DNA of 64,000 nt, taken from Carpediemonas membranifera BICM (lineage: Eukaryota; Protista; Fornicata). The notes below the pieces were generated by a model. That model was not told the DNA's origin. It did not search any database and saw nothing but the letters and a program-made list of their open reading frames with translations. This document shows positions 5,148-41,539 of the stretch, piece by piece; position 1 is the stretch's first letter; every line of letters begins with the position of its first letter. Position numbers and translations under genes: made by a program. The stretch covers positions 186,001 to 250,000 of the forward strand of contig JAHDYR010000004.1 in NCBI GenBank assembly GCA_019828565.1, written 5' to 3'.

Positions 5148-5547
5148 CGGTAAATAGAGGGCTTGTGGGGCATGCTGTATGGTGCAGCGCTTGGGCTCAA
5201 GTCTGTCCTGCATTGTCGGACAGGCCTCATTGACCACCCAAGACAGCCCCAATGACACTGCACCGCGCGTTACCATCAGAGGTTCATGGTTTCATGTCAC
5301 GATGGCCGACTGCGCTCAAAGTCGCAAACTGCCCTTCCAAAGTGAGATTCATTCAGCGATATGAATGAGCGACGATGCATAAAGTTCGTTCCGCGCCTCC
5401 CACTTACGCAGCTGGTACGTTCCCTATCCCGTTGGTGCAGAGATGCAGCCCGCGGCGAGTTCAAGAGCACTAACACAGTGGATCTCAACAATGGTGCGTC
5501 CTCCCCGAGAATCTCACGCAGCAGCGAGTGCAGAGCAGTAGATCACA

Positions 5548-8500
5548 TGATCAGAGACGCCACGACGCGCATCTTCGCCCCAGATAGCAAGCTCCACCTC
5601 AAGCCCGTCGGATCCTCGCCCCTCACTGCTACAGACCTCAGCCGCGTCCTCGACCACCTCTCGACATTGGCCGTGCTGCCCAGAGAGTTCAGCATGAGGC
5701 TGACTGAGCCCGACCTCACTGTCACGATGAGGTATGGCAAGCTGGCCGCCGACAAGCCCGACAGCGCCGTCGACGATCTGCTCGCTGCCTGGAATGCGAG
5801 GATGGCTGAGTGCATCCAGACGATGAAGGGTCACACCAACTGGGTGTTCAGCGTCGCCTTCCTCCCTGACGGCACCATGCTCACTGGGTCATGGGATGGG
5901 ACGACCAAGCTGTGGGACAAGCGCGGCGCCTGCAAAATGTCGATGAAGCATGGTGGAAATGTTTTGTGCATCGCCGTCTCCCCGGACGGGTCAACCATCG
6001 CATCGGGCAGGACTGACCGCAAGATCAAGCTGTGGGACCAGTCCGGCAGACTCGTCAAGACACCAATAATGTGAGAAGCCTCGCCTTCTCCCCAGACGGC
6101 AAGACGCTGGTGTCCGGATCCGATGACAAGACAGTCAGGTCGTGGGACGTCGCCACCGGCGAGTGCAGGACGTTGGAAGGGCACTCAGATTGGGTGCTCT
6201 CCGTCGCCATCTCCCCCGACGGCAAGACCATCGTCTCTGGATCAAAGGACAAGACAATCAAGGTGTGGGTCGCTGAGTCGGGCAGACTCGAGCAGACTCT
6301 GGAGGGCCACACTGATTCTGTCTTCTCCGTCGCCATCTCCCCGGACGGCGCTCTGCTGGCCTCTGGGTCATTGGACAAGACCATCAGACTCTGGGACACC
6401 AGGACCTGGGAGTGCGTCGCCGTCCTCAGGGGGCACACGCACTTTGTCTTCAGCGTCGCCTTCTCGCCCGACGGCAGGACCCTCGCCTCTGGGTCTGGTG
6501 ACAACACCATCAAGCTCTGGAGCATCGACAGCGGCGAGTGCTTCGAGACGCTCAGGGATCATGCCGATAAGGTGTGGAGCGTCGCATTCTCCCCAGACGG
6601 GTCGACCCTGCTCTCTGGGTCTGATGACAACACCGCCAAGCAGTGGTCACTTGGTCGCTCTCCCGAGCTCACCGCCCTCGACCAGACCCTCGCCGAGCCT
6701 GTCCCGGCCGCGGCCATCGTCCGCCTCGAGGGCACCGCTACAGACCTCAGCCGCGTCCTCAACCACCTCTCGACGCGGCCCAGAGAGTTCAGCATGAGGC
6801 TGACTGAGCCCGACCTCACTGTCACGATGAGGTATGGCAAGCTGGCCGCCAACAAGCCCGACAGCGCCGTCGACGCCATGCTCGCTGCCTGGCATGCGAG
6901 GATGGCTGAGTGCATCCACACGATGAAGGGTCACACCGATGAGGTGTTCAGCGTCGCCTTCCTCCCTGACGGCGCCATGGTCACTGGGTCATGGGATGGG
7001 ACGACCAAGCTGTGGGACAAGCGCGGCGCCTGCAAGACGACGATGGAGCATGGCGGGTCTGTTCGGTGCATCGCCGTCTCCCCGGACGGGTCAACCATCG
7101 CCTCGGGCGGGACTGACCACAAGATCAAGCTGTGGGACCAGACCGGCAGACTCGTCAAGACGCTCGAGGGGCACACCGATGATGTGAACAGCCTCGCCTT
7201 CTCCCCAGACGGCAAGACGCTGGTGTCCGGATCCGATGACAAGACAGTCAGGTCGTGGGACGTCGCCACCGGCGAGTGCAGGACGATGGAAGGGCACTCA
7301 GATTTGGTGCTCTCCGTCGCCATCTCCCCCGACGGCAAGACCATCGTCTCTGGATCGTCTGATAGGACGATCAAGGTGTGGATCGCTGAGTCGGGCAGAC
7401 TCGAGCAGACTCTGGAGGGCCACACTGATTCTGCCGTCTCCGTCGCCATCTCCCCGGACGGCGCTCTTCTGGCCTCTGGGTCTTGCGACAACACCATCAG
7501 ACTCTGGGACACCAGGACCTGGGAGTGCGTCGCCGTCCTCAGGGGGCACGCGAGTTCTGTCCGCAGTGTCGCCTTCTCGCCCGACGGCAGGACCCTCGCC
7601 TCTGGGTCTGGTGACAACACCATCAAGCTCTGGAGCATCGACAGCGGCGAGTGCTTCGCGACGCTCAGGGGTCATGACAATATTGTGCGCTGCGTCGTCT
7701 TCTCCCCAGACGGGTCGACGCTGCTCTCTGGATCTTCCGACAACACCGCCAAGCAGTGGCCCTCCACTAACTCACCAGAAATCAAGGAGGTCTGCGCCCA
7801 ACCCACGCTCGGCGCCGACATCCGCCTGCCGTCCGACGACTCGCCCCTCTACCTCGCCGACCTGGCGCGGGTCGTCATCCACATCCTCGCCACGGGCCTG
7901 CCCCGCTCCTTCAAGATGAGGCTGGCCCACCCCGAATGCACCGTCTCTCTTGGTCCTACCGGATTCACGTCGAGCCAAGCCGCCGATGTTGAAGCCCTTC
8001 TCGAGCTACTCAACCGCCACCCTATGTTACTGACACTGTTGGCTGAAACACGTGCTCTCGACGCCGTTGACGAAGCGCTGTACGTGGCCGCGGATCTGAG
8101 CGACGCCAAGCGCCTGCTGGCCGCCGCCGGCCCGCACGCGGAGCAGCACGAGGCGCGAGTGCTCGCGCTGAGGACCGACCTCGCCCGCCTCCAGCCCGTG
8201 CAGGCGCTCGCCAAGGACCCGATGCCCGCGCTCAGGGGCCGCGTCAAGGAGGCGCTGGAGAGGAGCGACGAGCTCCACGCGCACATCATCAGCGGCGACG
8301 TCGCCAAAATGCGCTCGAAGAAGCTCCGGAGTGTCAAGTTCAGCCCCGTCGTCCTCAACTGCCTCGATCGCGAGCGCCGGTCGCCGCTGCACAGCGCGTT
8401 CGTGCACGACCAGCCGCAGGCCTTCGCGGCGCTGCTCAAGGCCGGCTGCCTGCTCGACGACGCCTTCCCGGACGGCCACCCGCTGCTGGCCGCCGTCGCC

Positions 8501-10003
8501 AAGCCGCCGATGCTGGCCGCGATGCTGGCCGCGAGGGTTGACATCGACACCGTCAGCCGGAACACGACTGCGCTCGTGGTCGCCATCCAGGGCGGCCACT
8601 GGGACTCCGCGACGAAGCTGCTCGCCCGCGGCGCCGACCCCCTCCTCCCGCCGGTCGGCGTCAACGCGCTGCAGGTCGTCAAGGGCGTGGCCGACCCGCT
8701 CATGGCCGGCGTGATCCGGGCCGCCATCAACGACGCCCTGACGAAGCAGCTCAGCGACGCCATCACGCAGGGCGACACCGCTGCCGTGAAGCGGCTGCTC
8801 GCGGCGGGCGTGTCCGCGAACGGCGTGGACGGCAAGATGCCGCCGCTCTTCGCTGCCGTCAAGGCGGGCAACTTCGACATCGTCAGCCTGCTGCTGAAGC
8901 ACGGCGCCGACCGGGCCGCGACGTACAAGGGCAAGACAGCTGCCCAACGCGTGAAGAAGGGCAGCAACCTGCAGTTCTTGCTGCAGAGCCAAGCAGAACC
9001 CGCTCGTGTGAACTATGACCTCAACGCGGACATCACGAAGCCGGCGGGCAGCATCGCGTTCAGCCAGGCCGACCGCATCGGCGAGGGCGGCATGGCGGCC
9101 GTCTTCCGCGGCACGTACGGCGGCACCGACTGCGCCGTCAAGGTCGTCGCGCAGGCCGACCTGAACGCGGTGCAGGCCAGTCGGCTGCAGAACGAGATCT
9201 TCGTCCACAAGCAGCTGCGCCACAGCAACGTCGTCGCGCTCTACGCGCTCGAGCAGGACGACCGGGAGATCCGGCTCGCGCTCGAGCTCGCGTCGGGGTC
9301 GCTCTCTGCGCTGCTGCTCTCGAAGGCCGACCTGCCCTGGGACGCGCGGCTGAAGTTCGCGCGCGACATCGCGGCGGCCATGGCGTTCATCGTGGGCGAG
9401 GGCTACGAGCACAGGGACCTCAAGTCGCTCAACGTCCTCATCACTGGCTCCACAGCAAACCTTAGCGACTTCGGGCTGACCGCGAGGCTCGACGATCATG
9501 TGAATTTCGTCGAGGGCTCGTGGCCGTGGATGGCGCCCGAGCGCTTCGACGGCGTGGGCGGCGAGAAGGCCGACGTCTACGCCTTCGGCATCACGCTCTG
9601 GGAGATCGCCGCGCGCGACATCCCGTACCGCCAGGAGCGCCTCGGGCTCGACGCCATCCGCGCGCACGTGCGGGCTGGCTACCGGCCGACGATCCCCGCG
9701 GGCACGCCGGCGGCCGTGGGCGAGCTGATCCGCCGCTGCGTGGCGCCCGACCCGCGCGACCGCCCCACCTTCGCGGAGGTCGTCGCCGCGCTGCCCGACA
9801 GCGCCTCGACCGAGATGTACACGGAGAGCGCCGTGCGCAACCACGAGGTCGGCACCTTCGCGAACGCCAGCGCGCCCTGGATGACGCTGTCCGAAGACGA
9901 GAGAGCAGCCGCGCTCGCCGCGATGGGCACGGTCACCGCGACATACCGCACGAACGCGCCCAGCGCCCCGGGCCTGCGCACGCTGAACGACATGTATAGG
10001 TAA
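5548..10003 (+). pseudogene. WD40 (2 propeller modules)-ankyrin-TKL protein kinase, copy 1; frameshifted near 6061
   Basis: ORFs 5361-6074 and 6032-10003 join after restoring a 13-nt deletion (gctcgaggggcac) present in the paralogous modules. GH..WD repeats, ankyrin motifs (SPLHSAF, TALVVAI, PPLFAAVKAGNFDIVSLLLKHGAD), kinase GEGGMA/AVK/HRDLKSLN/DFG/WMAPE. Confidence 0.85.
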
Positions 10004-28255: not shown

Positions 28256-30109
28256 ATGGCTGATTCTTGGGGAGATTTTGGAGATAGCAACACCGCAACT
28301 ACCGCAGCACCATCCTCGGGGATCGCTGGCGGTGATTCCTGGACCACCGGGCCATCCACCGGTGGCTCCGGTGATTCCTGGAATGGTGGTGCCTCTGGGA
28401 ACGCTGGCGGCTTCGGCGGCGACGATGGCTGCAACCTTGGTGAAGGTCTCAATGATATAGACTTTGCCAACGAGAGTCTGACGGAGATCCCGAAGAACTT
28501 CTACCATGAAGATCCCATCGTCTCAGCTCGTCCTGACCACGAGATACAGCGCATCTTGCGGGACTACGACATCACCACAGCGGGTACGGACGTTCCTCGC
28601 CCGGTTACTACATTCAAGGAGGCTGGGTTCGTCGGCGACATTCAGGCCATTATTGATGACGCAGGATTCACTAAGCCCACTCCCATCCAGGCCCAGGGCT
28701 TCCCTGTCGCTCTCTCTGGCCGCAATGTGGTCGGTATTGCCGCCACTGGCTCTGGCAAGACCCTTGCCTTCCTCCTTCCCGCGACGTCCCACATCCGTGC
28801 TCAGCCCCCGTCCGAGGCCGGCCAGGGTCCCATCGCACTCATCCTCACCCCCACGCGCGAGCTTGCCCTTCAGATCCAGAAGGAGTCCGAGCGTTTCGTT
28901 GAGACTGGCTTTAAGATCAAGTCTGTCTGCGTCTACGGCGGTGCGCCCAAGAACTACCAGGCCGGCGTCCTCCGCAACGGTATCGACATCGTCATCGCCA
29001 CCCCCGGCCGCCTCATCGACTTCCTCCAGTCAGGCGTCACCAACCTCAAGCGGGTGACCTACCTTGTTCTCGACGAAGCCGACCGTATGCTCGATATGGG
29101 CTTCATGCCCCAGGTCCGCAAGATCGTCGGCCAGGTCCGGCCTGATCGTCAGGTGCTGATGTGGTCTGCTACGTGGCCCAAGGAGGTTGAGACGCTGGCC
29201 AAGGACTTCATCGGAGACTATGTCCGCATCAACGTCGGCGACCCCGGCCTCAAGGCATGCCACGATGTCATGCAGGAGTTCATCTTCGACTGCTTCGACA
29301 TGCGCAGCAAGGTACGCCGCATGAATGACATTCTCCGCGACCTGCGCCAGAGGGACGGCGAGGGCGTGCGGGCCCTCGTCTTCACGCAGACTAAGCGCAC
29401 TGTCGACGAACTCGTCGAAGACATCTGCCGCATGGGCTTCAAGGCTGGCGGCATCCACGGCGACAAGTCCCAGCGCGACCGTGACGCCGTCCTCCAGGCC
29501 TTTAAGCGCGGTTTCTGCGAGGTGCTCGTCGCCACAGATGTTGCCCAGCGCGGTCTCGACATCAAGAACCTTAACTATGTCATCAACTTCGACATGCCGA
29601 ACAATGCAGAGGACTATGTCCACCGCATCGGCCGTACGGGAAGAGCTGGCCAGAGAGGCACCGCCATCTCGTTCTTCAACGACGCCAGCGCCAGGCTTGC
29701 AGGCCCCATCATCAACGTCCTCCGCGAGGCCAACCAGCCTGTTCCTGACCAGCTTTCCCAGATGAAGAGCTCTGGCGGCGGGTTTGGCGGAAACGACCGC
29801 CGCACCCAGTACTCTGATAGGTGGCGTGACATGCCAATTGCTGACTCCTGGAAGTCCCGGCCCCCCCGCGACAGAGACGCCGGCCGCGGCGGCTTCGGTG
29901 GTGATCGCGGCTCTCGCGGCGGTGATTCTTGGGCCTCTGGTGGCTCTCGCGGCGGCGACAGCGGCTCTCGCGGCGGTGATTCTTGGGCCTCTGGTGGCTC
30001 TCGCGGCGGCGACAGCGGCTCTCGCGGCGGTGATTCTTGGGCCTCTGGTGGCGATAGCAAGCCTGCCCCTGCCTCCACTGGCAATTCCGGTGGCGACTCC
30101 TGGTTCTAA
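28256..30109 (+). CDS. DBP2: DEAD-box RNA helicase DBP2/DDX5 type
   Basis: KNFYHE, PTPIQAQG, AATGSGKT, PTRELA, TPGRLID, VTYLVLDEADRMLDMGF, QVRPDRQVLMWSATWPKEV, HRIGRTGRAG. Confidence 0.95.
   Translation: MADSWGDFGDSNTATTAAPSSGIAGGDSWTTGPSTGGSGDSWNGGASGNAGGFGGDDGCNLGEGLNDIDFANESLTEIPKNFYHEDPIVSARPDHEIQRILRDYDITTAGTDVPRPVTTFKEAGFVGDIQAIIDDAGFTKPTPIQAQGFPVALSGRNVVGIAATGSGKTLAFLLPATSHIRAQPPSEAGQGPIALILTPTRELALQIQKESERFVETGFKIKSVCVYGGAPKNYQAGVLRNGIDIVIATPGRLIDFLQSGVTNLKRVTYLVLDEADRMLDMGFMPQVRKIVGQVRPDRQVLMWSATWPKEVETLAKDFIGDYVRINVGDPGLKACHDVMQEFIFDCFDMRSKVRRMNDILRDLRQRDGEGVRALVFTQTKRTVDELVEDICRMGFKAGGIHGDKSQRDRDAVLQAFKRGFCEVLVATDVAQRGLDIKNLNYVINFDMPNNAEDYVHRIGRTGRAGQRGTAISFFNDASARLAGPIINVLREANQPVPDQLSQMKSSGGGFGGNDRRTQYSDRWRDMPIADSWKSRPPRDRDAGRGGFGGDRGSRGGDSWASGGSRGGDSGSRGGDSWASGGSRGGDSGSRGGDSWASGGDSKPAPASTGNSGGDSWF
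29907..30052 (+). repeat. 54-bp coding tandem repeat (~2.7 units; GSRGGDSWASGGSRGGDS)
   Basis: Units start at 29907, 29961 and 30015. Confidence 0.9.
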
Positions 30110-33201: not shown

Positions 33202-33964
33202 GCTCTCGAAGGCCGACCTGCCCTGGGACGCGCGGCTGAAGTTCGCGCGCGACATCGCGGCGGCCATGGCGTTCATCGTGGGCGAGGGCTACGAGCACAG
33301 GGACCTCAAGTCGCTCAACGTCCTCATCACTGGCTCCACAGCAAACCTTAGCGACTTCGGGCTGACCGCGCGGCTCGACGATCATGTGAATTTCGTCGAG
33401 GGCTCGTGGCCGTGGATGGCGCCCGAGCGCTTCGACGGCGTGGGCGGCGAGAAGGCCGACGTCTTCGCCTTCGGCATCACGCTCTGGGAGATCGCCGCGC
33501 GCGACATCCCGTACCGCCAGGAGCGCCTCGGGCTCGACGCCATCCGCGCGCACGTGCGGGCTGGCTACCGGCCGATGACCCCCGCGGGCACGCCGGCGGC
33601 CGTGGGCGAGCTGATCCGCCGCTGCGTGGCGCCCGACCCGCGCGACCGCCCCACCTTCGCGGAGGTCGTCGCCGCGCTGCCCGACAGCGCCTCGACCGAG
33701 ATGTACACGGAGAGCGCCGTGCGCAACCACGAGGTCGGCACCTTCGCGAACGCCAGCGCCCCCGGCATGATGACGCTCGGCGAGGGCCAGCCCGCGATCA
33801 TCGGAACCGTCGGGCAGACGTTTGGTAACGCCAGCGCGCCCTGGATGACACTGTCCGAAGACGAGAGAGCAGCCGCGCTCGCCGCGATGGGCACGGTCAC
33901 CGCGACATACCGCACGAACGCGCCCAGCGCCCCGGGTCTGCGCACGCTGAACGGGGCATATTGA
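33202..33964 (+). pseudogene. 5'-truncated kinase fragment of the WD40-ANK-kinase family
   Basis: Near-identical to 40544-41306; begins mid-kinase and lacks the Gly loop and AVK lysine. Confidence 0.85.
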
Positions 33965-34197
33965 TAATGAGACCTCGACTTGGCCTTGGACGCTAGAGAC
34001 TGGCGTACCCAGTAAAATGGCCATTCTTGGCTTTCTATGCTTCTTCCATGATGGCAGTTTCGTCCAAATATGTTGACCATTTTTGACCTTCTCAAAAATG
34101 GGCTGAGTGAAGAATAAGAAAGTTTCGAACAATTCATGTTGCCGACCGTGCAGCTCCCGCGTATCCACCCAGCGCCGGCCATGCGAGCCGGCTTACT
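33202..34197 (+). repeat. 996-bp direct repeat, copy A (copy B 40544-41539)
   Basis: Homology runs from gctctcgaagg to gcttact at a constant offset of 7342. Confidence 0.9.
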
Positions 34198-35141
34198 TAT
34201 GGAGCAGGGACGGGCTGCAGCAGGTGCGGTCACACTACCAGCTGCCGCCCGTCGCACCGAGAAAGAAGGAGGGCATGCGATACGACTATCCCTCGGACAT
34301 GACGGTCGACTCGTTCGCATCATCTGATGAGGCGGCTGGAATTCGGATGCGGGCGTCTGCTGCGACGCTTCGGGAGGGTGGTTTGAGTCCGCGGGGCAGG
34401 GCTGGCGCGGTGCTAGCGATCGGACGGCACCCGGCCGAGATCCGCGACCGTCGTGGGAAGGAGAAGCTGACACCCGTGTTTGCCCCGGTCGACAACGACG
34501 CGACCACTGTGGTGCTCGAGCACAACGTGGAGCAGACCATACCCTCGCTCGGCCCAGCCCCATCGGTGCCGATGACGCCGAACCGGCCGGCCATCATGAC
34601 GTCTGCAGCCTTCCAGACGGTGCTGAACGCCGCTCCCAGGGTGTTTACGGCGGCACCGGCTAACCTGCTCTATTCAGACCAGACGCACGGGCGGTCACTC
34701 GCCACGCTTTACCGCAACCGTGAGGGGTTCGACGCCACTGTCCTGTGCATTGAGACCGAGCTCGGCGGGGTCATCGGCGCCTTCGTCACGAGCGAGTGGA
34801 GACCGCACCAGCACCGCACGTACTACGGGACCGGCGAGAGCTTCGTGTTCAGGGCCAAGGGAAAGCAGTGCACGCTCTTCCCATGGTCGGGCGCCAACAA
34901 CTCGTTCCAACTCTGCTGTAACGACATCCTCGCAGTCGGCGGGGGCAGGCCAGGATTAGGAGCGGCAATTTATTTAACGTCTGATTTGGTGAAGGGGGAG
35001 TCAAATCAATGCCCCACATTCGGCTCGCCATGCCTCAGCCACACCGTGATCGACACTGACAGAACCCATGGCGAGTTCGCAGTGGCGTCCATTGAAGTGT
35101 GGGGCTTTAGACGCAAGACCGGTCGGCTGCTGGCCGTGTGA
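34107..35141 (+). CDS. TLDc-domain protein (Oxr1/NCOA7-like); start uncertain
   Basis: LLYSDQTHGRSLATLY, GGVIGAF, YYGTGESFVF, WSGANNSFQ, AVGGG, CPTFGSPCL, IEVWGF. Confidence 0.88.
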   Translation: MKNKKVSNNSCCRPCSSRVSTQRRPCEPAYLWSRDGLQQVRSHYQLPPVAPRKKEGMRYDYPSDMTVDSFASSDEAAGIRMRASAATLREGGLSPRGRAGAVLAIGRHPAEIRDRRGKEKLTPVFAPVDNDATTVVLEHNVEQTIPSLGPAPSVPMTPNRPAIMTSAAFQTVLNAAPRVFTAAPANLLYSDQTHGRSLATLYRNREGFDATVLCIETELGGVIGAFVTSEWRPHQHRTYYGTGESFVFRAKGKQCTLFPWSGANNSFQLCCNDILAVGGGRPGLGAAIYLTSDLVKGESNQCPTFGSPCLSHTVIDTDRTHGEFAVASIEVWGFRRKTGRLLAV

Positions 35142-35658
35142 GATTTTGTTGAAGCGGTGGATTTGTTTTTAGGGGTATGTATTCATATATTTGTCATAAA
35201 TAGATTTAATGCCGGCCATCCAACCTCATGAGACACGCTAGTCTCCATCGCTTCACCATGCCATCGCTTCACAAACAGCTGCGAGCGCCGCGAGGCCCAT
35301 GAAGCCGGGCCGGCCAGCACTGGAACCTGCCACGGCCAGCCTGCCAACCTGCATTTGACAGCGCAGACGATCTGTGGACATAAAACACACACATCTGTGG
35401 CGCTGGATGTCGATCTCCCGAAACCGCTTCGACTTCCAAGAAGTCACCACAGAATGTCCGAAACAGCGCGATCAGTGCAGAGACGGTGCACAAAGTACGC
35501 TTTTGACGGCAAATTTACACAGCTGGTACGTTCCCCGCCACTTTGGCGCAGAGATGCAGCCCGCGGCGAGTTCAAGAGCACTAACACAGTGGATCTCAAC
35601 AATGGTGCGTCCTCCCCGAGAATCTCACGCAGCAGCGAGTGCAGAGCAGTAGATGACA

Positions 35659-38600
35659 TGATCAGAGACGCCACTACGCGCGTCTTCGCCCCAGAGGACA
35701 AGCTCCACCTCAATCCCATCGGATCCTCGCCCCTCACCGCTACAGACCTCAGCCGCGTCCTCAACCACCTCTCGACGCGGCCCAGAGAGTTCAGCATGAG
35801 GCTGACTGAGCCCGACCTCACTGTCACGATGAGGCATGGCAAGCTGGCCGCCAACAAGCCCGACAGCGCCATCGACGATCTGCTCGCTGCCTGGCATGCG
35901 AGGATGGCTGAGTGCATCCAGACGATGAAGGGTCACACCAGTGGCGTGATCAGCGTCGCCTTCCTCCCTGACGGCACCATGCTCACTGGGTCATGGGATG
36001 GGACGACCAAGCTGTGGGACAAGCGCGGCGCCTGCAAAATGTCGATGAAGCATGGTGGAAATGTTTTGTGCATCGCCGTCTCCCCGAACGGGTCGACTAT
36101 CGCCTCGGGCGGGAGTGACCGCAAGATCAAGCTGTGGGACCAGACCGGCAGACTCGGCAAGACGCTCGAGGGGCACACCAATAATGTGAGAAGCCTCGCC
36201 TTCTCCCGAGACGGCAAGACGCTGGTGTCCGGATCCGATGACAAGACAGTCAGGACGTGGGACGTCGCCACCGGCGTGTGCAGGACGATGGAAGGGCACT
36301 CCCATTTGGTGCTCTCCGTCGCCATCTCCCCCGACGGCAAGACCATCGTCTCTGGATCATGGGATTATACCATCAAGGTGTGGATCGCTGAGTCGGGCAG
36401 ACTCGAGCAGACTCTGGCGCGCTACAAGAATTCTGTCACCACCGTCGCCATCTCCCCGGACGGCGCCCTGCTGGCCTCTGGGTCTTGCAACCACACCATC
36501 AGACTCTGGGACACCAGGACCTGGGAGTGCGTCACCGTCCTCAGGGGGCACGCGAGTTCTGTCCGCAGCGTCGCCTTCTCGCCCGACGGCAGGACCCTTG
36601 CCTCTGGGTCTTGGGACAACACCACCAAGCTCTGGAGCATCGACAGCGGCGAGTGCTTCAAAACGCTCAGAGGTCACACAGATTGGGCGAACAGTGTCGT
36701 CTTCTCGCCAGACGGGTCGACCCTGCTCTCTGGGTCAAAGGACAAGACCGCCAAGCAGTGGTCCCTCAGTCGCTCTCCCGAGCTCACCGCCCTCGACCAG
36801 ACCCTCGTCCAGCCTGTCCCGGCCGCGGCCATCGTCCGCCTCGAGGGCACCGTCGCCGACCTCACCCGCGTCCTCAACCACCTCTCGACGCGGCCCAGAG
36901 AGTTCAGCATGAGGCTGACTGAGCCCGACCTCACTGTCACGATGAGGCATGGCAAGCTGGCCGCCAACAAGCCCGACAGCGCCATCGACGATCTGCTCGC
37001 TGCCTGGCATGCGAGGATGGCTGAGTGCATCCAGACGATGAAGGGTCACACCAGTGGCGTGATCAGCGTCGCCTTCCTCCCTGACGGCACCATGCTCACT
37101 GGGTCATGGGATGGGACGACCAAGCTGTGGGACAAGCGCGGCGCCTGCAAAATGTCGATGAAGCATGGTGGAAATGTTTTGTGCATCGCCGTCTCCCCGA
37201 ACGGGTCGACTATCGCCTCGGGCGGGAGTGACCGCAAGATCAAGCTGTGGGACCAGACCGGCAGACTCGGCAAGACGCTCGAGGGGCACACCAATAATGT
37301 GAGAAGCCTCGCCTTCTCCCGAGACGGCAAGACGCTGGTGTCCGGATCCGATGACAAGACAGTCAGGACGTGGGACGTCGCCACCGGCGTGTGCAGGACG
37401 ATGGAAGGGCACTCCCATTTGGTGCTCTCCGTCGCCATCTCCCCCGACGGCAAGACCATCGTCTCTGGATCATGGGATTATACCATCAAGGTGTGGATCG
37501 CTGAGTCGGGCAGACTCGAGCAGACTCTGGCGCGCTACAAGAATTCTGTCACCACCGTCGCCATCTCCCCGGACGGCGCCCTGCTGGCCTCTGGGTCTTG
37601 CAACCACACCATCAGACTCTGGGACACCAGGACCTGGGAGTGCGTCACCGTCCTCAGGGGGCACGCGAGTTCTGTCCGCAGCGTCGCCTTCTCGCCCGAC
37701 GGCAGGACCCTTGCCTCTGGGTCTTGGGACAACACCACCAAGCTCTGGAGCATCGACAGCGGCGAGTGCTTCAAAACGCTCAGAGGTCACACAGATTGGG
37801 CGAACAGTGTCGTCTTCTCGCCAGACGGGTCGACCCTGCTCTCTGGGTCAAAGGACAAGACCGCCAAGCAGTGGTCCCTCAGTCGCTCTCCCGAGCTCAC
37901 CGCCCTCGACCAGACCCTCGTCCAGCCTGTCCCGGCCGCGGCCATCGTCCGCCTCGAGGGCACCGTCGCCGACCTCACCCGCGTCCTCGACCACCTCTCG
38001 ACGCGGCCCAGAGAGTTCAGCATGAGGCTGACTGAGCCCGACCTCACTGTCACGATGAGGTATGGCAAGCTGGCCGCCAACAAGCCCGACAGCGCCATCG
38101 ACGATCTGCTCGCTGCCTGGCATGCGAGGATGGCTGAGTGCATCCAGACGATGAAGGGTCACACCAGTGGCGTGATCAGCGTCGCCTTCCTCCCTGACGG
38201 CGCCATGGTCACTGGGTCATGGGATGGGACGACCAAGCTGTGGGGCAAGCGCGGCGTGTGCAAGATAACGATGAAGCATGGCGGGAAGGTTCGGTGCATC
38301 GCCGTCTCCCCGAACGGGTCGACCATCGCCTCGGGCGGGAGTGACCGCAAGATCAAGCTGTGGAGGCGCGGCAGACTCGTCAAGACGCTCAAGGGTCACA
38401 CCAGGGATGTGAGAAGCGTCGCTTTCTCCTCAGACGGCAAGACGCTGGTGTCCGGATCCGATGACAAGACAGTCAGGTCGTGGGACGTCGCCACCGGCGA
38501 GTGCAGGACGATGGAAGGGCACTCCCATTGTGTCAAGTCCGTCGCCGTCTCCCCCGACGGAAAGGCCATCGTCTCTGGGTCTGATGATGAGACGATCAAG

Positions 38601-41306
38601 GTGTGGATCGCTGAGTCGGGCAGACTCGAGCAGACTCTGGAGGGCCACACTGATTCTGTCAACGCCGTCGCCATCTCCCCGGACGGCGCTCTGCTGGCCT
38701 CTGGGTCTTGCGACAACACCATCAGACTCTGGGACACCAGGACCTGGGAGTGCGTCACCGTCCTCAGGGGGCACGCGAGACCTGTCTTCAGCGTCGCCTT
38801 CTCGCCCGACGGCAAGACCCTCGCCTCTGGGTCTTGGGACAACACCATCAAGTTCTGGAGCATCGACAGCGGCGAGTGCTTCGCGACGCTCAGGGGTCAT
38901 GACAATATTGTGCGCTGCGTCGCCTTCTCCCCAGACGGGTCGACCCTGCTCTCTGGATCTGACGACAAGACCGCCAAGCAGTGGCCCTCCACTAACTCAC
39001 CAGAGATCGAGGAGGTCTGCGCCCAACCCACACTCGGCGCCGACATCCGCCTGCCGTCCGACGACTCGCCCCTCAACATCCGCGACCTGGCGTGGGTCGT
39101 CATCCACATCCTCGCCACGGGGCTGCCCCGCTCCTTCGAGATGAGGCTGGCCCACCCCGAATGCACCGTCTCTCTTGGTCCTACCGGTTTCACGACGAGC
39201 CAAGCCGCCGATGTTGAAGCCCTTCTCGAGCTACTCAACCGCCACCTCGTGATGCAGAAACTGTTGGCTGAAACACGTGCTCTCAACGCTGTTGACGAAG
39301 CGCTTTACGTGGCCGCGGATCTGAGCGACGCCAAGCGCCTGCTGGCCGCCGCCGGCCCGCACGCGACGCAGCACGAGGCGCGAGTGCTCGCGCTGAGGAC
39401 CGGCCTCGCCCGCCTCCAGCCCGTGCAGGCGCTCGCCAAGGACCCGATGCCCGCGCTCAAGGGCCGCGTCAAGGAGGCGCTGGAGAGGAGCGACGAGCTC
39501 CACGCGCACATCATCAGCGGCGACGTCGCCAAGATGCGCTCGAAGAAGCTGCTCAGAGACAAGCTGTTCGGCCCCGTCGTCCTCAACTGCCTCGACCGCG
39601 AGCGCCGGTCGCCGCTGCACAGCGCGTTCGTGCACGACCAGCCGCAGGCCTTCGCGGCGCTGCTCAAGGCCGGCTGCCTGCTCGACGACGCCTTCCCGGA
39701 CGGCCACCCGCTGCTGGCCGCCGTCGCCAAGCCGCCGATGCTGGCCGCGATGCTGGCCGCGAGGGTTGACATCGACACCGTCAGCCGGAACACGACTGCG
39801 CTCGTGGTCGCCATCCAGGGCGGCCACTGGGACTCCGCGACGAAGCTGCTCGCCTGCGGCGCCGACCCCCTCCTCCCGCCGGTCGGCGTCAACGCGCTGC
39901 AGGCCGTCAAGGGCGTGGCCGACCCGCTCATGGCCGGCGTGATCCGGGCCGCCATCAACGACGCCCTGACGAAGCAGCTCAGCGACGCCATCACGCAGGG
40001 CGACACCGCTGCCGTGAAGCGGCTGCTCGCGGCGGGCGTGTCCGCGAACGGCGTGGACGGCAAGATGCCGCCGCTCTTCGCTGCCGTCAAGGCGGGCAAC
40101 TTCGACATCGTCAGCCTGCTGCTGAAGCACGGCGCCGACCGGGCCGCGACGTACAAGGGCAAGACAGCTGCCCAACACGTGAAGAAGGGCAGCAACCTGC
40201 AGTTCTTGCTGCAGAGCCAAGCAGAACCCGCTCGTGTGAACTATGACCTCAACGCGGACATCACGAAGCCGGCGGGCAGCATCGCGTTCAGCCAGGCCGA
40301 CCGCATCGGCGAGGGCGGCATGGCGGCCGTCTTCCGCGGCACGTACGGCGGCAGCGAGTGCGCCGTCAAGGTCGTCGCGCGGGCTGACCTGAACGCGATG
40401 CAGGCCGACCGACTCCAGAGCGAGATCTTCATCCACAAGCAGCTGCGCCACAACAACGTCATCGCGCTCTACGCGCTCGAGCAGGACGACCGGGAGATCC
40501 GGCTCGCGCTCGAGCTCGCGTCGGGGTCGCTCTCGGCGCTGCTGCTCTCGAAGGCCGACCTGCCCTGGGACGCGCGGCTGAAGTTCGCGCGCGACATCGC
40601 GGCGGCCATGGCGTTCATCGTGGGCGAGGGCTACGAGCACAGGGACCTCAAGTCGCTCAACGTCCTCATCACTGGCTCCACAGCAAACCTTAGCGACTTC
40701 GGGCTGACCGCGGGGCTCGACGATCATGTGAATTTCGTCGAGGGCTCGTGGCCGTGGATGGCGCCCGAGCGCTTCGACGGCGTGGGCGGCGAGAAGGCCG
40801 ACGTCTACGCCTTCGGCATCACGCTCTGGGAGATCGCCGCGCGCGACATCCCGTACCGCCAGGAGCGCCTCGGGCTCGACGCCATCCGCGCGCACGTGCG
40901 GGCTGGCTACCGGCCGATGACCCCCGCGGGCACGCCGGCGGCCGTGGGCGAGCTGATCCGCCGCTGCGTGGCGCCCGACCCGCGCGACCGCCCCACCTTC
41001 GCGGAGGTCGTCGCCGCGCTGCCCAACAGCGCCGCGACCGAGATGTACACGGAGAGCGCCGTGCACAACCACGAGGTCGGCACCTTCGCGAACGCCAGCG
41101 CCCCCGGCATGATGACGCTCGGCGAGGGCCAGCCCGCGATCATCGGAACCGTCGGGCAGACGTTTGGTAACGCCAGCGCGCCCTGGATGACACTGTCCGA
41201 AGACGAGAGAGCAGCCGCGCTCGCCGCGATGGGCACGGTCACCGCGACATACCGCACGAACGCGCCCAGCGCCCCGGGCCTGCGCACGCTGAACGGGGCA
41301 TATTGA
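35659..41306 (+). CDS. WD40 (3 propeller modules)-ankyrin-TKL protein kinase, intact copy
   Basis: Open 1983-codon frame; likely start MIRDATTRVF; same architecture as 5548-10003 with one extra module. Confidence 0.9.
35754..37988 (+). repeat. Apparently perfect 1113-bp tandem duplication (linker + 7 WD40 blades); diverged third unit follows to ~38985
   Basis: Identical shadow ORFs at offset 1113 (35933/37046, 36238/37351); first visible mismatch at 37989. Confidence 0.9.
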
Positions 41307-41539
41307 TAATGAGACCTCGACTTGGCCTTGGACGCTAGAGACTGGCGTACCCAGTAAAATGGCCATTCTTGGCTTTCTATGCTTCTTCCATGATGGCAGT
41401 TTCGTCCAAACATGTTGACCATTTTTGACCTTCTCAAAAATGGGCTGAGTGAAGAATAAGAAAGTTTCGAACAATTCATGTTGCCGACCGTGCAGCTCCC
41501 GCGTATCCACCCAGCGCCGGCCATGCGAGCCGGCTTACT
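40544..41539 (+). repeat. 996-bp direct repeat, copy B
   Basis: Contains the kinase 3' half, the spacer and the first ~90 nt of the TLDc ORF. Confidence 0.9.

Follow-up and report, generated by a model that had tools for sequence, protein, structure and literature searches.

In Podospora, HET-E and HET-D recognise HET-C, and the hypervariable WD40 sensors known so far belong, to our knowledge, to NLR-like (STAND) proteins of fungi and bacteria. In the Podospora NWD family, strong positive selection acts on codons 7 and 9 and on codons 25 and 27 of the repeat (Paoletti et al. 2007, PMC1805685). Codons 7 and 9 sit on either side of the conserved codon 8 in the d-a loop, codons 25 and 27 on either side of the conserved codon 26 in the b-c turn, and both pairs are part of the interaction surface (PMC1805685). 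Here we describe a family of genes with comparable variation in the metamonad protist Carpediemonas membranifera, based on a 64,000-nucleotide stretch of its 24.2-Mb, 69-contig genome (contig C5, positions 186001-250000; hereafter the window, whose first letter is position 1). Reading of open frames and Pfam matches in the window identified two members of this family, genes A and B, both of which are long and intron-free. Their repeated unit is a 1113-bp (371-aa) module, consisting of a minidomain and a seven-bladed WD40 propeller, which is present twice in gene A (A1 and A2) and three times in gene B (B1 to B3) and is followed by ankyrin repeats and a protein kinase domain. We found that the top face of the propeller is under strong diversifying selection while its scaffold is under purifying selection, and that blade-sized gene conversion recombines the variants among copies. 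A literature search returned no paper on this family in Carpediemonas.

Selection on the propeller top face and exchange between modules

An earlier examination of the stretch from its letters alone (the sequence-only reading) had reported five propeller modules, almost identical except at fixed positions. The coordinates of all five match and every motif it quoted is present, for example NWVF/DEVF/SGVI in blade 1, or DWVL/DLVL/HLVL/HCVK together with KDK/SDR/WDY/DDE in blade 4. However, only one nucleotide in 1113 bp separates B1 from B2, so that four of the modules are distinct, and A1 is frame-shifted. To describe the variable positions we used a set of 21 canonical top-face hotspots of WD40 repeats that was fixed before variability was viewed, comprising GH+3 and GH+5, which flank the strand-a valine, and D-1, which precedes the aspartate of the b-c turn; an extended set of 35 sites additionally includes GH+2 and D+1 of each blade. 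Of the 338 aligned columns in the five window modules, 77 vary; these include 28 of the 35 extended sites (odds ratio 20.7, p=2e-14). The claim of near-identity outside fixed positions was therefore right about where variation concentrates but overstated, as the modules (apart from the B1/B2 pair) share 84-87% protein identity and 49 of the variable columns fall outside the 35-site set.

For the analysis of selection, 30 full modules from the whole genome were considered, of which 26 lie on C5. Nei-Gojobori counts for every pair among 21 distinct C5 modules gave a nonsynonymous divergence (dN) of 0.62 and a synonymous divergence (dS) of 0.17 at the 21 hotspot sites, corresponding to a dN/dS ratio (omega) of 3.6, and dN-dS was positive in 2000 of 2000 site bootstraps. 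Omega was 2.6 for the 35 extended sites, 0.40 for the other 241 propeller codons (hereafter the framework) and about 1 for the minidomain, where divergence is very low. This test uses no tree and is thus unaffected by recombination. We also fitted a codon site-class model (GY94, F3x4) in which four segments each had their own maximum-likelihood tree and shared all other parameters. Model M2a was strongly preferred over M1a (likelihood ratio statistic 190.7, 2 degrees of freedom, p about 4e-42), with omega2=5.2 for 11% of sites. Naive empirical Bayes posteriors exceeded 0.95 at 26 sites, 16 of which fall within the 21-site set and 20 within the 35-site set. Site-wise dN/dS is accordingly far above 1 at the positions that the sequence-only reading had singled out, and the ratio of 1 or less that it had named as speaking against its proposal was not found. 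Residues at the hotspots are enriched in W (16%, 4.8-fold), R, F, N and Y, and 21 of 22 modules carry a unique 35-site signature.

To locate these sites in three dimensions, we modelled module B3 with AlphaFold2. The model is of good quality (mean predicted local distance difference test score, pLDDT, 88; predicted template modelling score 0.78) and comprises 28 strands in seven blades, preceded by a minidomain (residues 1-55) made of a helix, three strands and a second helix. A Foldseek search matched the propeller to solved seven-bladed WD40 propellers with a target-normalised TM-score of 0.95; its neighbours were the designer and natural repetitive propellers 7big, 2ymu (Nostoc) and 5yzv (Thermomonospora), at 40-49% identity, and WDR5 at 34%. 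Residues were classed by the secondary-structure elements of this model and the known WD40 topology rather than by solvent exposure. On this basis, 20 of the 23 propeller sites under selection map to d-a loops, b-c turns or position 2 of strand a (odds ratio 33, p=7e-12). The a-b and c-d loops on the opposite (bottom) face have a dN of 0.02-0.05, versus 0.22-0.24 in the top loops. The selected sites are thus predicted, by a confident model, to cluster in top-face loops, and the scatter over several surfaces that had been named as a possible refutation was not seen.

The hypervariable codons also differ in base composition. They prefer T at the third position, with a third-position GC content (GC3) of 0.65, compared with 0.85 for framework codons and 0.69-0.78 for genes nearby. 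Aspartate is encoded by GAT in 85% of cases at hypervariable sites versus 9% in the framework. When each combination of column and codon box is given one vote, the counts are 45 T to 42 C at hypervariable sites versus 32 T to 171 C in the framework (p=8e-10). This usage would fit young, mutation-driven codons that escape GC-biased gene conversion, or it may reflect a targeted mutational process.

Evidence for exchange between modules came from several tests. A test of the pairwise homoplasy index (PHI) type was significant for all sites (p=0.0005) and for the framework, whether taken whole (p=0.0005) or at third positions only (p=0.03). Over half of the informative-site pairs failed the four-gamete test, and the Hudson-Kaplan minimum number of recombination events (Rm) in the framework is at least 36. 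Moreover, a GENECONV-like permutation detected significantly long identical tracts in 42 of 190 module pairs, with a median length of 109 bp (range 50-664), roughly the size of one blade (126 bp). For instance, B1 shares an identical 237-bp tract across blades 5-6 with a module 44 kb away (C5:265811), from which it differs at 46 other sites. Compared blade by blade, A1, A2, B1 and B3 each have a different module as nearest relative from one blade to the next. The mosaic sharing of variants that had been noticed by eye, and for which recombination tests had been suggested, is thereby confirmed. Since gene conversion recombines the variants, almost every module has a unique top face.

Genes A and B and the wider family

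The features of both genes are listed in Table 1. Gene B likely starts at ATG 35454 or ATG 35658, and its N-terminal leader is conserved with gene A from ~35515 onwards. In gene A, the deletion in A1 shifts the frame into the TGA, and the gene is therefore broken. Pfam WD40 (PF00400) recognises 21 repeats in gene B (1.8e-243) and 12 + 2 repeats in gene A. The homogenised unit is the module and not the blade: blades within one module share a mean identity of 41% (range 18-55%), versus 80-91% between whole modules. The near-identity of B1 and B2 suggests either a very recent tandem duplication or unequal crossover within the gene, or a duplication in the assembly.

Table 1. Coordinates of genes A and B, their parts and a related fragment in the window
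Feature	Position	Strand	Remarks
Gene A	5361..10003	+	same architecture as gene B, two modules; frames 5361-6074 and 6032-10003
Module A1	5634-6742	+	carries 13-nt deletion
Gene A break	6055..6074	+	13 nt across 'LEGH' of blade 3 absent relative to B1 (~6058); TGA 6072-6074
Module A2	6743-7855	+	second module of gene A
Gene A kinase	about 9068-9793	+	Pfam and open-frame reading
Orphan fragment (kinase C-lobe and 3' flank)	33203..34198	+	99.3% identical to 40544-41539
Gene B	35355..41306	+	1983-codon open frame, intact: three modules, linker, ankyrin repeats, kinase
Module B1	35745..36857	+	~55-aa alpha-beta minidomain and seven-bladed WD40 propeller
Module B2	36858..37970	+	1113-bp tandem copy of B1, 1 nucleotide apart
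Module B3	37971..39080	+	protein 85% identical to B1; the module modelled
Diverged minidomain copy and long helices	38985..39596	+	family-specific, after the last propeller; without Pfam match
Ankyrin repeat region	39597..40226	+	Ank_2 1e-14, weaker repeats upstream; paired helices in model
Protein kinase domain	40296..41021	+	PF07714 1.8e-39, PF00069 2.5e-35

The order of WD40 propellers, ankyrin repeats and a TKL-type kinase, as given by the sequence-only reading, agrees with the Pfam matches. The translation contains the lysine of VAVK as well as HRDLKSLN, DFG and APE motifs, the domain scores better against the Tyr/TKL-type model PF07714 than against PF00069, and the nearest solved kinases are CSK, BRK and LCK, followed by CTR1, MLK and ROCO4. 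Judged by these motifs and scores, the kinase is probably active and of TK/TKL type with a Ser/Thr-type catalytic loop, its placement in the TKL group being probable. The model of the C-terminal half has a mean pLDDT of 58 (below 50 in the kinase part) and is usable for the minidomain, the helices and the ankyrin layout only. As the highest 19-residue Kyte-Doolittle hydropathy is 1.49, reached inside the ankyrin region, there is no hydrophobic or membrane segment and we take the proteins to be soluble. A membrane receptor kinase was rejected on the same ground, and the term 'receptors' used in the sequence-only reading holds for the sensor architecture but not for a location at the cell surface. 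Its description of the proteins as lacking NACHT proved accurate, since Pfam found neither NACHT nor NB-ARC in the non-WD parts of genes A and B, and a six-frame search of the whole genome gave no match to NACHT (PF05729) or NB-ARC (PF00931). A HET domain is not present in the family proteins either, and there is no Pfam match to Roc, COR or Ras in the N-terminal 192 aa or the C-terminal 773 aa. Without a ROC-COR tandem in the Pfam results, membership in the ROCO/LRRK kinases was rejected.

A six-frame search with one module returned at least 123 matches in the genome. Most lie at 6 to 325 kb of C5 (~320 kb), with others on contigs C63, C26, C8, C9, C54, C49 and C2. Many are fragments or contain internal stops; long open frames of 1300-2200 codons persist. 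The broken copies and fragments indicate birth-and-death turnover. The module is also joined to other partners: another C. membranifera protein joins a module that shares 85% identity with B3 to three AAA+ ATPase domains, and further fusions in this species combine the module with a kinase and an IBR half-RING, or several modules with unknown regions. Across these predicted proteins, the output domains are swappable.

All public protein records that are 56-88% identical to genes A or B are from C. membranifera. Full-length relatives of the ankyrin-kinase half were likewise found in this species only, other matches being to the kinase domain alone at no more than 34% identity, and many C. membranifera ankyrin and kinase proteins have the same helical linker. 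A word search found no relatives of the minidomain plus helical linker outside C. membranifera. When 1.84 billion representative proteins were searched exhaustively with a minidomain profile, 14 of the 15 matches checked were from C. membranifera and one was a weak metagenomic match. The family so far appears restricted to this species. The minidomain, as at 37971-38138 of the window, has no Pfam family and occurs also in C. membranifera proteins annotated as RhoGEF, small GTPase and other kinases (e.g. P0194, P0237). Word-based protein searches did not return genes A and B as existing records, the matches listed including only paralogues of at most 96% identity, so that public annotation may lack models for both genes.

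The ankyrin-kinase halves of genes A and B show only 69 differences (dS 0.036, omega 0.84), too few to be informative. These halves (8001-10000 and 38001-41300) are unusually GC-rich compared with neighbouring genes (GC 0.66-0.70, GC3 0.90-0.94), which is consistent with GC-biased gene conversion in an often-recombining family. Gene B and a TLDc-like gene (34107-35141) are bracketed by a 996-bp direct repeat (33203-34198 and 40544-41539), which is the remnant of either a ~7.3-kb segmental duplication or a deleted family member. In a region unrelated to the family, the window also contains a perfect 54-bp tandem repeat of 2.7 copies with 100% identity (29907-30052).

A candidate recognition repertoire and its alternatives

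Rapid change that is confined to a binding face and accompanied by swapping between copies is typically seen in receptors for foreign molecules. The features shown here, namely a sensor that varies on a conserved scaffold, exchangeable outputs, genomic clustering, turnover and selection on a known protein-binding face, together fit an intracellular recognition repertoire. On balance, we therefore lean towards the view that gene B, which is intact, and gene A, which was recently broken, are members of a family of soluble intracellular candidate non-self sensors that would signal defence through their kinase; an immune-sensor role is the best inference from these sequences. Under this proposal, each propeller would bind a different, fast-evolving protein ligand, most likely derived from viruses, intracellular bacteria or ingested prey. 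Binding might switch the kinase on, either by relief of an ankyrin- or linker-mediated block or by clustering of the proteins, and the activated kinase would then start a defence response.

Several points weigh against this proposal. Gene A is broken and many C5 family members contain stop codons, while the analysis covers 30 modules of a much larger family. Recombination within the four segments can inflate the likelihood ratio of the site model, though the tree-free counts agree with it, and mosaics in near-identical repeats could partly be artefacts of assembly or polishing. The four public runs are contig sets; X1 and X2 appear to represent one and the same DNA-like data set, and the remaining two hardly overlap the locus. 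How the kinase might be activated is purely inferred, given the poor model of that part. Finally, selection on a binding face does not by itself separate immunity from allorecognition or from fast-evolving internal partners.

A role in internal cell biology, in which the propellers would target the kinase or other outputs to many endogenous substrates or structures and the family would have grown by repeated neofunctionalisation, has some appeal. Diplomonads, which are related to Carpediemonas, have large kinase and ankyrin expansions; the helical linker recurs in many ankyrin and kinase proteins of this species; and the presence of the minidomain in proteins of RhoGEF and small-GTPase type points to a general signalling toolkit. 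Yet settled substrate specialisation should leave purifying selection within each lineage, whereas an omega of 3.6-5 on the binding face only, near-unique faces, continuing gene conversion and rapid pseudogenisation amount to open-ended diversification, and we consider a purely internal role rather unlikely. Another alternative is a system of allorecognition, mating or kin recognition, whose propellers would detect polymorphic proteins from other Carpediemonas cells and whose kinase, once cells have fused, would signal incompatibility or cell death. It draws on the match of selected positions and shuffling to the only experimentally characterised hypervariable WD40 family, itself an allorecognition system (PMC1805685). 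Against this stand dozens of paralogues in one genome instead of alleles at a few loci, the lack of an identified partner locus, and the absence of HET and NACHT domains. We also know of no described cell fusion or sexual cycle in Carpediemonas membranifera, and taken together these points make the allorecognition explanation distinctly doubtful.

It is also conceivable that no adaptive system exists, and that the pattern stems from relaxed constraint on the loops of decaying repeats, local mutational bias, mis-assembly or mis-polishing. The broken state of gene A and of many other copies would be in line with this idea, the odd T-ending codons at hypervariable sites could hint at a mutational process, and short-read contigs fragment over the locus. 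Relaxed constraint, however, cannot raise dN/dS above 1, and it was rejected as a candidate because omega exceeds 1 at top-face sites while the equally exposed loops of the bottom face stay conserved, as does the framework. In addition, the long open frames persist and the selected sites match structural hotspots that were fixed before the data were viewed, all of which renders a non-adaptive origin very improbable.

A bolder version of the non-self sensor proposal is a cassette-based immune repertoire. The intact and broken C5 modules would serve as a donor library from which blade-sized conversion builds new faces on a few expressed kinase or ATPase sensors, with diversification in the germline or even during mitotic growth, independently of NLRs and of antigen-receptor gene conversion; the T-ending hypervariable codons would then mark rapid mutational turnover or targeted mutational input. 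We regard this extension as a long shot.

Whatever its ligands, the family is a clean natural example of scaffold homogenisation coexisting with binding-face diversification in one repeat family. It carries the arms-race signature of the NLR-like WD40 sensors in a deep-branching, free-living protist and without a NOD domain, the propeller being wired instead to ankyrin-kinase, AAA+ and kinase-IBR outputs. If these proteins are non-self sensors, repeat-based intracellular immune repertoires would have arisen independently on a kinase chassis, and metamonads, for which we know of no described innate immunity, would gain a concrete, testable candidate immune system.

Comparison with known systems

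The Carpediemonas family lacks the defining features of NLRs, of ROCO kinases and of membrane receptor kinases and belongs to none of these groups. In plants, kinase-fusion and tandem-kinase resistance proteins act in intracellular immunity without being NLRs; in them, a kinase is joined to a domain that serves in recognition or as a decoy. They belong to unrelated lineages and carry other fused domains, and we know of no hypervariable propeller repertoire among them. LRRK2 and other ROCO kinases resemble the Carpediemonas proteins in being soluble multi-domain proteins that join ankyrin and WD40 repeats with a TKL-type kinase, and ROCO4 is, as mentioned, among the nearest solved kinases to that of gene B. 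They differ in domain order and in their ROC-COR GTPase, which is not detectable in the Carpediemonas genes. Brown-algal LRR-ROCO proteins with exon shuffling have been proposed as shuffled non-NLR receptors (PMC11378527); there the variable element is the leucine-rich repeat (LRR) exons, in Carpediemonas it is the top face of a WD40 propeller.

Outside the species, the most similar propellers are found, at 40-57% identity, in fungal NACHT-WD40 proteins, in cyanobacterial or actinobacterial NACHT, NB-ARC or nSTAND proteins, and in bacterial kinase-WD40 proteins. The bacterial Ser/Thr kinase-WD40 (PkwA type) and STAND-WD40 proteins have a closely similar propeller, with 2ymu and 5yzv as the best solved structures, and some of them also pair a kinase with WD40. 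In bacteria, however, the kinase is N-terminal of the propeller, and ankyrin repeats, minidomain and multi-propeller cassettes are lacking; conversely, the family-specific parts from Carpediemonas had no bacterial relatives in our searches.

Another close parallel is the HNWD/NWD family of NACHT-WD40 NLR-like proteins in Podospora anserina (HET-E, HET-D, HET-R), although one system belongs to a fungus and the other to a metamonad protist. The Carpediemonas proteins have neither NACHT nor HET, and their output is ankyrin repeats and a kinase. HNWD repeats are more than 80% identical and their diversity involves a variable number of repeats, whereas in Carpediemonas the homogenised unit is the whole 371-aa module, with blades only ~41% identical, and diversity resides in one to three whole propellers per protein. 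Both families nonetheless exchange sequence between paralogues, contain pseudogenes and use the same WD40 subtype (45-50% identity to fungal NACHT-WD40 proteins). Exactly the same four repeat positions are selected in both, flanking the conserved valine and aspartate. The equivalence of the variable positions to those of HNWD, already drawn in the sequence-only reading, holds for codons 7, 9, 25 and 27 (PMC1805685).

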